Made by a program: the position numbers and the translations under genes
The notes under the pieces: generated by a model
The model's database searches: none
What the model was told of the DNA's origin: nothing
The model's input: the letters and a program-made list of their open reading frames with translations, nothing else
Source of the DNA: Zygnema circumcarinatum SAG 698-1b
Taxonomy: Eukaryota > Plantae > Zygnematophyceae
Reading direction: 5' to 3'
Assembly (NCBI GenBank): GCA_037447605.1
Contig: CM074804.1
Location: 1,240,001-1,304,000 of the forward strand
Length of the DNA stretch: 64,000 nt
Shown here: positions 1-3,125 of the stretch, piece by piece
Layout of the letters: each line of letters begins with the position of its first letter
Position numbering within the stretch: position 1 is the stretch's first letter

Positions 1-248
1 AACTCCACCGCATTCTCGATGGCATTATAGTTTCTGCATTGTCTGACTTTTCTATGCTTGATGGCAAGTACGAATTTTCCATCTCCTCCTAGCTCTATTT
101 TATGTTTGGACACGCAACCAACTGACCAACAGCTCGTAGACATGGTCAGCATATGCTTGCCAAAGTCATGAGTGTTTGCACTGCCTGTGCAGCCAACTAC
201 TTCCGTTAAAGTAAATAATTACTTTGGCAAGAGGCATTTCCTGGCATT

Positions 249-249
<1 letters not shown>

Positions 250-340
<91 letters not shown>
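250..340. repeat. (CT)n microsatellite, probably intronic in the 3D gene
   Basis: Near-perfect CT dinucleotide run. Confidence 0.95.
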
Positions 341-344
<4 letters not shown>

Positions 345-418
345 TCTCTCGTCCCCCTTAACACCCCTTCCCGCCCTCTCCCTTCCTCTCTCGTGTGCTG
401 ATTATTTTCTCGATGCAG

Positions 419-1781
419 GTACTGGACAGATACCAATTTGTTGGGCCAATCATATCACGGTCTCACTGCTAGGGGCACCTTCCCTAGCCAGGTAAGAGGT
501 CGCATTCAAATCTATTCCTTACAATAACAGCTTGTAGCCCTCAGTTTGAAGTTCAGGGTTGCAGGAGCATCACCGTTAGGGCTTTGGAATGGAACTAAAC
601 TTTCATGTGTGGTTCATTCAAGGAATTCCACCTGAGAGCGTCTGTCTATCAATTCCGCTATTTTATTAGAAGCCATTTTTGTTTCCGAACCATGTTTTGC
701 TTGCCCCTTTCTTCCAATGCAATGTCCCATTCCCTCCTGCAGGCCCGGCCGGCCCTTCTTTCGCCTCTCAGCCTCCGTCACTGTGAACGGATTCCGGGCC
801 GCCTTTTACTGTTTCCATGGCGGCTGTTGCCGCGCTACGGAACTATCGCAGCTGACACGCAGTTCTTCCCCTTCGGAACTCGCATGTTTGTTCCGGGCTA
901 TGGCTGGGGAGTGGTGGGTGAACTCCTGTTTTTTTTTTTTTTTTTCTTCGATTGTTGGGGGGAGAGGGGGAGTGAGTATATTGGTGTTGGGAGTGCTCGT
1001 GGTTTGGAGGTGTATGATAGTTTTGGGAGTTTTAGGGCTACAGGCGTGGGGAGGAGCAAGGCGAGGGGAAGCGATGCCTTTGGTGATTTAGGGTTGTGGG
1101 CACCATGAAGTGGCATGTGCTTTTAACTGGGGTTTGTGGGTGGGCTGTGCCGTGCAAGGGCAGGTGGAGGACCGGGGTTCCGCCATAAAGGGGCCTGCTC
1201 GAATCGACTTGTTTCATCATTCTCATAATGAGGCAATGAAGTGGGGGAGAAGGCGACTCAAGGTGGGAAAGGGAACGGAAGGCGAAGAAGAGTACATGCT
1301 TTAGGTCTGAAGGATCTGATGGTTTTGAGATTTTTTTTAGAAAGTCAAGAGAAAGGTGGGAAGGTTTAAGAGGGAGGGAGGGAGGGATGGAGGGAGGGAG
1401 GGAGGGAGTGTGGCAATGGAGGGAGGGACAGATTTGGAAAATATATACTTTTTTGAAATAAAGGGATGAGCTTGTCTGATCATGTCATGTAGAGCGCGTG
1501 AAACAGGGAGGTGGATCCCAGGGAGGTGGATCCGAGGGGGCGGACATGATCAACCTTGGAGTTGCAAACAAGCCGATCATAGCCATCATTATCTTGTCTG
1601 ACGAAGGCTCTGCAGGGCAATGTCTCCATTCATAAGCTGAAACTAATCGATTCTATTTGATGCCACGTGTCAGGTCCTGGTTCTACGGCCCGGCGAGAGC
1701 GTGGTGGACCTTCTCAACCTTCCCCCGCCGGTCAAGTTCGTCCTGCGCGGCTTGGATTGGGCGAGGCGCTTTGTTTTCTGA
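419..1781 (+). CDS. 3D-domain (MltA-like/peptidoglycan lytic transglycosylase-type) protein, 5' partial; exons 419-491, 743-913, 1164-1262, 1674-1781
   Basis: GT-AG exons splice in frame to [30 protein letters not shown]...[69 protein letters not shown]...RRFVF*. The three aspartates of the 3D motif (IAAD, EDRG, RIDL) are present. The upstream exon and start were not identified. Confidence 0.85.
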
Positions 1782-3125
1782 ATGGAGCCATGGGAGGGAG
1801 AGAATGGCTTTTAGGGTTTCCATGTTGCTCCATGTTCCGTCATCCCGTGCCGTTTCCGTTTGTTGCACTCCGGTCCGTCTTGTTCTGTTCTGTTCCGTTC
1901 CGTTCCTTTCCTTAAAAGCTTACAGCTGCGCATTTCTATGCATTGCAAACAGGTGGCAAAGGTTCGACCAAAATTTGTTGATTCGCTTTTTTCTTAGTGG
2001 GAAAGGAGGTGGTGGGCAAGTCTTGAAACAAGATAGCAAGGTGGTTGGCAAAGTTTGATAGCGACGGCTTTTCTTGCTTTGGGATGACGGTAAATCAACA
2101 ATTTTGAATTATTCCTGTACCATGTAAACAACATTTTTTTGTCCCCGACCTCTCCTCCCCCCCCTCCCCCCCACTTTTTTTTTTTACAATCAGCCCTTCA
2201 CATGTGCTTGTACTTGAATCACTCAGTCTGGTGTTACTGTTTGCCGTTTTACTGCTCCAACTTGTTGTTCTCGAGTTAAGTGCCTTGTCACTGTGTAGCC
2301 AGCCAATGGTCGCAACCATTGGCTGGCGACCCAGGCAGTGGTTTTTAACACACTATTCCTGTGATGGAAATTACTATGGACGCTTCTTAAATTATTCCAG
2401 AATGACGTTGACATAGATAAACTCCTTGACCACCATCATCATCATCATCTCCAGCAGCAGCATCTTCATCATTGACCCTAGTTCCTAAACCTGAACCCTT
2501 AACCCTAAACTCTGCATCCCAGAGCCTAAATCCTATACCCCAAACCTGCACCCTACGCCCAAAAACCTAAACCCAACTCTAAAGCTTCAACCGGAACCCT
2601 AATCCCCATTGCTTAAGAAATGCCTCGTACAATTTCGTCGGTCAAAAGTCCAGCAGTTCCAAGAAACAAACAACAACCCCAAGCATATAATTGACAATGG
2701 AATTATCAACACTTGATTTTGCGCACCCTCCTTGACATAGAACGGCAGAACTTTGTCCACAATTAGTCGAGCTGCCGAAAAAAAATACGAAAAACTCAAT
2801 TTTGGTTCCAGCTTTCACAAAGAAAATAGAAAAACTACATTCGCCTTAAGCCCTAAAGCCGAAAAAAAAGGTCTACAATGAAATTTACAGATACTTTCAG
2901 GGATTTAAAGGGGGGGTTACAAAATTTGAAGCGCTTTAAAAAGATTTAGGGTTTTGAGACTAAATTTTAGGGTCTCAAAATAGCATGAGCTAGAACTCAT
3001 CAAATGACCAAATTTTATACAAAGAACCTCCGTTTCCGTGGCCCCATTCAAACTCTACAACCCACTTTACGCAAACCCTAAAAAACCCTTAATCTTCCGA
3101 CTCTCCTAATTATCTTTTTATTCCT

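Follow-up and report, generated by a model that had tools for sequence, protein, structure and literature searches.

The genomic stretch analysed here, 64,000 nucleotides (nt) of Zygnema circumcarinatum SAG 698-1b (GenBank assembly GCA_037447605.1, contig CM074804.1, forward strand, positions 1,240,001 to 1,304,000; 'the window', numbered from its first letter), opens within a nuclear, expressed, intron-bearing gene of this streptophyte alga. The gene encodes a protein with a 3D domain and adds a eukaryotic variant to an enzyme type already known from bacteria. We consider it probable that the protein belongs to a green-lineage clade of 3D lytic transglycosylases derived from an ancient bacterial transfer, with plastid-envelope peptidoglycan, or fragments of it, as the most likely substrate. 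Its value as a candidate lies in an intact catalytic machinery combined with an occurrence across species much like that of peptidoglycan synthesis. What we infer from the comparisons below is that the protein is enzymatically active, what it acts on and where. Peptidoglycan in green-plant plastids is established in mosses and debated in seed plants, and to our knowledge the enzymes that cut or remodel it are barely known, comprising DipM, MltB and VanY in one moss.

Four forward-strand open reading frame segments with canonical splice sites join in frame to give 149 residues ending at a TGA stop, as read from the sequence and checked by script (Table 1). All three introns are of the GT..AG type, and the exon at 419 opens with the last base (G419) of a Lys codon that an intron splits. 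Transcript evidence came from Logan contigs, for which ten public runs were listed; seven contain the stretch and four were aligned. In those four runs the exon joints match the prediction with 0 mismatches, offsets of 1-3 nt at the joints being letters that fit both sides (alignment ambiguity). A single contig of 2,315 nt (run X1, record 2; depth ~97) covers 419-488, 740-912, 1163-1260 and 1672-2125 contiguously. Depth is 47-180 over exons versus 0-12 over introns, and positions 1-241 carry low-depth, pre-mRNA-like contigs only. The original prediction had read the gene as spliced, and the contigs of four runs, with exact joints, bear this out. An alternative donor at 917 with an acceptor at 1158, which would add Gly-Gln, was ruled out, as contigs join 913 to 1164.

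The Marchantia orthologue, mapped on its own locus, has six coding exons (residues 1-14, 15-62, 63-87, 88-144, 145-177 and 178-212), of which the last four share their boundaries with the window exons; in Closterium, exons 1, 2 and 6 map as in Marchantia. Because the intron positions match, the exons in the window are numbers 3-6 of six, exons 1 and 2 lying upstream of it. Contigs extend upstream of 419 with ..ATTCCCCTTTTAGCCAA (reading ..IPLLAK), a sequence absent from the window, so that the 5' exons must lie beyond its start. By orthologue mapping, exon 1 encodes M-x6-I-E-x-TAYC, and exon 2 encodes a CGxCCxWEWG cluster and an insert of ~35 residues. The sequence for the first part of the catalytic barrel, with the TAY threonine and the CxCGxCC cluster, therefore lies upstream of the window and is known solely from transcript overhangs. 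Judged from orthologues, the full product probably has ~210 residues. The expectation that four exons would splice into a complete 3D domain with three aspartates thus holds for the exons, the aspartates and the splicing and fails for completeness.

Two further observations concern this upstream region. A guessed 18-nt micro-exon at about 203-220 was rejected as the upstream exon: the overhang ..IPLLAK differs from it, and the true upstream sequence lies outside the window. Record 2 of run X1 runs ~1.5 kb upstream of 419, where ~190 nt of coding sequence are expected; the excess may be a long 5' untranslated region (UTR), a retained intron or a merged neighbouring transcript.

A second isoform is present in run X2, in which one 60-nt contig (window 417-448) joins ..RVIEATAYC straight to 419, in frame, at a depth of 47 versus 78 for the main form. 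Because exon 2 lies between TAYC and the position-419 exon in the orthologue map, this variant is exon-2 skipping; it drops the Cys cluster and the green-lineage insert and takes IEATAYC directly to R-YWTD. Another species has this junction, TAYC-R-YWTD, in a full transcript (P0007). A structural model of the exon-2-skipped isoform has a predicted local distance difference test score (pLDDT) of 85.9 and a predicted template modelling score (pTM) of 0.77, and its best solved match is YuiC, a 3D protein of Bacillus subtilis. Variation around exon 2 is also seen in Cryptomeria (isoforms X2 and X4) and in a Riccia fluitans model.

The Pfam 3D domain (PF06725) is split over two exons of the window, 743-913 covering profile positions 2-28 and 1164-1262 covering positions 34-64. 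The second of these exons alone scores 35.9 bits against a curated cutoff of 23.8, placing the original assignment to the 3D family above threshold, and nearly all full-length orthologues carry a precomputed PF06725 match. The three aspartates are encoded by GAC at 854-856, 1170-1172 and 1206-1208. Their counterparts have assigned roles in two bacterial enzymes, where YuiC D129, D151 and D162 correspond to MltA D261, D297 and D308 (PMC4499186). The third aspartate of the window protein (1206-1208) occupies the alignment column of the catalytic residue, D162 in YuiC and D308 in MltA. In YuiC, D162 is catalytic, the backbone of S154/A155 binds the N-acetyl group, and the crystal trapped a 1,6-anhydro disaccharide product (PMC4499186). 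A threonine that orients the aspartate, T91 in YuiC and T99 in MltA, lies in a TAY motif (PMC4499186). The transcript overhang of Zygnema reads ..IEATAYC, and this threonine (T11) is invariant in the green clade; its equivalence to YuiC T91 is a motif reading, the N-terminal stretch aligning to YuiC at just -0.9 bits. The catalytic aspartate, the other two aspartates, the orienting threonine and the sugar-binding GSAIKG loop are invariant in all green-lineage sequences aligned.

The family profile matches YuiC with an E-value of 7e-20, and the AAD, V-x-D-x-GSAIKG and x-D-L motifs align column by column. The fold was modelled on P0001, the nearest relative and an 84%-identical orthologue, in place of the window protein. 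The AlphaFold 2 model (pLDDT 85.6) has YuiC as its best PDB match (E 7e-6), followed by MltA, with expansins and kiwellin as weak structural matches lower in the lists. A C-terminal extension is predicted to be helical in this orthologue model and has no counterpart in any of the bacterial homologues. The ratio of nonsynonymous to synonymous substitution rates (dN/dS) between the window and the P0001 mRNA is 0.044, with dS saturated, and the 3D gene is under strong purifying selection. Because the catalytic positions are invariant, dN/dS is this low and YuiC and MltA are the matches, the expected product is an active lytic transglycosylase, one that would cleave strands of the N-acetylglucosamine (GlcNAc)/N-acetylmuramic acid (MurNAc) type and leave 1,6-anhydro ends.

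YuiC, a stationary-phase survival protein of the SpsC group (PDB 4WLI, 4WJT and 4WLK), has the same minimal 3D double-psi beta-barrel and is the best solved match to the green family in both structure and sequence. The TAY threonine (by motif reading), AAD, V-x-D-x-GSAIKG and x-D-L-Y/F motifs align, and the exon-2-skipped green isoform has nearly the YuiC loop length from TAY to G-L-T-x-x-G. Identity is ~25% overall. YuiC is secreted via a signal peptide, whereas the green proteins have none and are encoded by nuclear, intron-bearing genes; YuiC in turn lacks their CxCGxCC cluster, the ~35-residue insert before GTIAAD and the C-terminal extension. MltA, the membrane-bound lytic murein transglycosylase A of E. 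coli (PDB 2AE0 and 2PI8), has the same 3D barrel and the same three aspartates and acts on peptidoglycan strands, but is an outer-membrane lipoprotein of ~340 residues with a second inserted domain; only ~85 residues of the protein superpose.

Homologues were sought with the exon pieces, the orthologue P0001 and a Cryptomeria protein as queries, the exon-4 piece being placed within its open reading frame. The distribution given here derives from protein searches, a full-library profile search and cluster look-ups, and refers to named database matches. The exon-4 query found proteins of ~210 residues, namely P0001 and those of Closterium, Marchantia, Selaginella and Diphasiastrum, together with a Desulforhopalus protein; exon 4 is 84% identical to P0001 and 74-79% identical to the Closterium and Marchantia orthologues. 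Algal members of the family come from Prasinoderma coloniale, Pyramimonas (two genes), Pedinophyceae, Mesostigma, Chara, Closterium, Mesotaenium and Spirogloea; bryophyte members from Sphagnum, Physcomitrium (two genes), Ceratodon, Marchantia, Riccia and Calypogeia; and vascular members from Selaginella, Diphasiastrum, Adiantum, Cryptomeria, Taxus and the angiosperms Tasmannia lanceolata and Colocasia esculenta. Of the streptophyte algal classes looked at by name, only that of Klebsormidium lacked a match; in angiosperms the family is rare. Core chlorophytes and common model angiosperms gave none among the named matches. Complete absence from angiosperms is ruled out by Tasmannia (P0305) and Colocasia (P0145), found with the Cryptomeria seed. 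The Colocasia model P0145 lacks the subfamily insert before GTVAADT, a gap that may be a skipped or mis-called exon part. TARA Oceans contigs also carry the family, with compact eukaryotic neighbours (ESCRT-II, ubiquitin E1 and fibrillin); on TARA contig L086 the neighbours gave no Pfam matches, and a eukaryotic origin of that contig is putative.

The plastid peptidoglycan pathway is kept in Prasinoderma, Micromonas, streptophyte algae, bryophytes, ferns and one cupressaceous conifer, and is lost in core Chlorophyta and most seed plants (PMC7455551; PMC10784329). Comparison of our named matches with the published tables shows that the distribution of the 3D family resembles this pattern qualitatively. 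No paper on a plant 3D family was found in searches by gene identifier, by 3D domain plus chloroplast peptidoglycan, and in an organelle-proteome atlas. Nor did a 3D protein appear in the plastid peptidoglycan toolkit in the literature searched, which took in the DipM, moss precursor and Picea papers, the moss MltB/VanY paper being outside the search. Within that scope, the suggestion that a 3D protein falls outside the known toolkit agrees with our findings. The description of the family as overlooked is apt as regards papers on plants, none having been found, and inapt as regards databases, which already carry these proteins under the automatic name '3D domain-containing protein'.

The nearest relatives outside the green lineage are bacterial. 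In the GTDB species-genome collection, 575 stretches encode relatives; among the best 80 of these, 64 are labelled Thermodesulfobacteriota and the others are entered as legacy 'delta' or as unclassified, with no cyanobacterium among them. Neighbours in the protein atlas are a Streptophyta cluster and then Thermodesulfobacteriota. The nearest relatives by sequence are uncharacterised 3D proteins of Desulfobacterota (e.g. P0017 of Desulforhopalus vacuolatus, locus L079), which are 43-49% identical over ~175 residues (tblastn), with identity reaching 78% in the part that exon 4 encodes. They share a CxCxxCC cluster and, before GTIAADT, an insert with an FPW-x-LLP motif. The insert had been likened from the outset to the Desulfobacterota rather than the cyanobacterial type, a likeness that its presence in Desulfobacterota proteins and the lack of cyanobacteria among the best 80 relatives support. 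The bacterial homologues differ in having an N-terminal signal peptide, lipoprotein-type where read (hydrophobic, ending in Cys), and in lacking the WEWG-linked insert, the C-terminal helix and the introns.

A tree of 112 rows unites its 26 eukaryotic rows (25 streptophyte-type ones plus Pyramimonas) in a single clade with an SH-like approximate likelihood ratio test (SH-aLRT) support of 98, whose internal order roughly tracks the species tree; the window protein groups with P0001 and P0019, adjoining Zygnematophyceae. The stem of the eukaryotic clade is long, at 1.25 changes per site. When prasinophyte and other algal rows were added, all 38 eukaryote-like rows fell on one side and the bacteria on the other (SH-aLRT 90). 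A nesting within Desulfobacterota was rejected, eukaryotes and bacteria being two sides of one branch in an unrooted tree. The simplest reading of these sequence comparisons is one bacterial transfer that predates the divergence of the green lineages, with vertical inheritance since. Horizontal acquisition, as originally proposed, is upheld in its bacterial-type origin and Desulfobacterota kinship; a recent or streptophyte-specific event is not, with Prasinodermophyta, prasinophytes and streptophytes in one clade. After such an ancient transfer the signal peptide would have been lost, and the introns, the exon-2 insert and the C-terminal helix gained. The family may thereby exemplify a bacterial gene acquired before the green-lineage split and later given introns and new modules.

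In two Desulfocapsaceae genomes (L009, 1073-3465; L079, 959-3453) mutL directly precedes the 3D gene on the same strand, the two overlapping slightly or standing a few bases apart, an arrangement that recalls the amiB-mutL linkage of E. coli. The bacterial neighbourhood was set aside as a functional hint, since upstream conservation between these genomes is limited to mutL, which is uninformative.

The green proteins differ from the bacterial ones at their N-termini. In streptophytes, and in most other green-lineage members, the protein has just 7-20 residues ahead of the first barrel strand; a few prasinophyte or metagenome models have N-termini of 40-60 residues, which are not transit-like. 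The exon-2 module is hydrophobic in prasinophytes and basic in streptophytes, with the insert of Prasinoderma (P0294) and Mamiellophyceae-like forms containing a hydrophobic segment (Kyte-Doolittle 1.96-2.26). A much longer insert occupies the exon-2 position in P0294, in P0290 (TARA contigs L084 and L085) and in P0304 (Pyramimonas); the Gly/Ala-rich hydrophobic segments of these prasinophyte inserts, with values up to 2.26, look membrane-spanning, and streptophytes are without them.

We return to the proposal that the gene encodes a lytic transglycosylase acting on plastid-envelope peptidoglycan or its fragments. An intact double-psi beta-barrel core of the YuiC/MltA type would carry out lytic cleavage of glycan strands. 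The plastid wall is the likeliest substrate because the family has been kept together with plastid peptidoglycan synthesis and lost in most angiosperms and core chlorophytes. The enzyme might act in the intermembrane space or on the outer envelope, reached by a non-canonical route, or in the cytosol.

Several observations weigh against this proposal. No transit-like or signal peptide is present in any green-lineage orthologue read, an in-frame stop (TGA) precedes the ATG of the P0001 mRNA (L081) by two codons, and streptophyte forms contain no hydrophobic segment. The default prediction is consequently cytosolic, whereas peptidoglycan is located between the two membranes of the envelope. As regards species distribution, the agreement is qualitative, drawing on named database matches and published tables and not on a formal profile, and Klebsormidium, hornworts and glaucophytes gave none among those matches. 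The long stem of the eukaryotic clade leaves a change of function possible. The tree is moreover unrooted, and a derivation from Desulfobacterota is nearest-neighbour evidence only.

Since the N-termini are short and without transit or signal peptide, a stop lies upstream of the ATG in the P0001 mRNA, and streptophytes lack a hydrophobic segment, canonical stromal import and secretion both appear unlikely on sequence grounds. A non-canonical route to the envelope, or cytosolic action on wall fragments, is possible. The role in plastid wall remodelling that the original prediction put forward thus stays plausible from the species distribution alone and finds no targeting signal to match it. The lack of a transit-like N-terminus in any orthologue read argues against ordinary stromal import, and the other option raised, a secreted antibacterial enzyme, is unlikely, a signal peptide occurring only in the bacterial homologues.

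A possible but unlikely alternative is a cytosolic enzyme that does not remodel the plastid wall and degrades glycan fragments, whether from plastid peptidoglycan turnover, from invading or ingested bacteria or as chitin oligomers, for recycling or for the removal of immune triggers. The streptophyte proteins have no recognisable presequence or membrane segment, as a cytosolic enzyme would, and soluble penta-GlcNAc is a substrate for YuiC (PMC4499186). Lytic transglycosylases nevertheless normally cut polymeric strands in the wall compartment, the hydrophobic insert segment of prasinophytes suggests a membrane-bound ancestor, and the distribution tracks plastid peptidoglycan and not exposure to bacteria or fungi.

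A bolder form of the plastid-wall proposal, which we regard as doubtful, is that the family supplies the missing MltA-type glycan-strand cutter of the plastid wall. On this view, the green-lineage-specific module encoded by exon 2 would take the protein along a non-canonical route into the intermembrane space or to the outer envelope. Skipping of exon 2, of which two species provide examples, would then determine whether the enzyme is anchored or targeted, or instead free and minimal like YuiC. If this were true, Tasmannia and Colocasia would be pointers to seed plants in which a genuine peptidoglycan layer is still made.

It is improbable that the family has taken on a new role unrelated to peptidoglycan, either binding glycans without catalysis or cleaving another polysaccharide. 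The double-psi beta-barrel fold is common to expansins, barwins and kiwellins, and such a change would fit the long stem branch, the new modules (exon-2 insert and C-terminal helix) and the weak structural matches to expansins and kiwellin. The invariance of the three aspartates, the orienting threonine and the GSAIKG loop across the green lineage argues otherwise, as do the dN/dS of 0.044 and top matches that are the catalytic YuiC and MltA and not expansins. The bacterial identity of the closest non-plant homologues might have suggested that the assembly is contaminated here, or that a transferred gene survives as a dead relic; both readings are already refuted by three GT..AG introns spliced out in the transcripts of four runs, the same intron positions in Marchantia, a frame open to the stop codon under a dN/dS of 0.044, and host-typical microsatellites in the introns.

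Among plastid enzymes of comparable setting, MltB and VanY were reportedly described by Utsunomiya et al. in 2021 as plastid peptidoglycan hydrolases of Physcomitrium. They and DipM, like the 3D family in its proposed setting, are encoded by nuclear bacterial-type genes in lineages with plastid peptidoglycan. Their folds are unrelated to the 3D barrel (LytM/M23 peptidase, SLT-type transglycosylase and DD-peptidase), and they are reported to be chloroplast-localised, whereas the 3D family has no presequence. DipM is a reported plastid peptidoglycan hydrolase of the same moss (PMC4015805). The puzzle posed by the 3D family is that a wall cutter without a targeting peptide must reach a wall lying between two organelle membranes, or have another target. 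In Marchantia (Mp1g05360) and Physcomitrium (LOC112287588) the family offers a well-conserved candidate in single or low copy that is easy to knock out.

Table 1 Features of the 3D gene and repeats within its introns (window positions)
Feature	Positions	Strand	Basis and remarks
3' part of the intron preceding exon 3	1..418	+	Transcript contigs lose their match at 419; upstream continuation not in the window
(CT)49 microsatellite, inside the intron before exon 3	252-350
Coding exon 3 of 6	419..491	+	Acceptor AG 417-418, donor GT 492-493; spliced contigs, 4 runs; corresponds to Marchantia residues 63-87
Intron, 251 nt, GT..AG	492..742	+	Joint 488->740 (cut +3), all four runs
Coding exon 4 of 6, subfamily insert and first 3D part (GTIAADT..PGYGWGV)	743..913	+	Pfam 3D positions 2-28; contig pieces on 740-912
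Intron, 250 nt, GT..AG	914..1163	+	740-912 abuts 1163-1260 in X1 record 2, X2 record 8 and X3 record 13
Coding exon 5 of 6, second and third Asp	1164..1262	+	Pfam 3D positions 34-64, 35.9 bits, E 8.5e-9
Intron, 411 nt, GT..AG	1263..1673	+	Joint 1260->1672 (cut +2), four runs
(GAGG)n array, (GAGG)14, inside intron 1263-1673	1370-1428
15-bp tandem repeat (duplication), inside intron 1263-1673	1504-1538
Coding exon 6 of 6, last barrel strand and green-lineage-specific C-terminal extension; stop TGA 1779-1781	1674..1781	+	Sequence, transcript contigs, script check
3' UTR	1782..2143	+	Contigs unbroken to 2125-2143 at exon-level depth

Two repeat features lie downstream of the gene. Positions 2296-2336 hold an inverted repeat whose 13-bp arms enclose a 4-nt loop (GCCAGCCAATGGT-CGCA-ACCATTGGCTGGC). 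Within it, the 30 nt at 2305-2334 recur inside contigs of 2.5-2.6 kb (X1, X6), with flanks that are the same in all four runs and unlike those in the window, so that the motif is shared with a transcript from elsewhere. Degenerate CCCTAAA-like units of the plant telomere type lie at 2470-2610, outside the 3D gene, and follow closely after a His/Ser-rich (CAT/CAG)n stretch on their upstream side.

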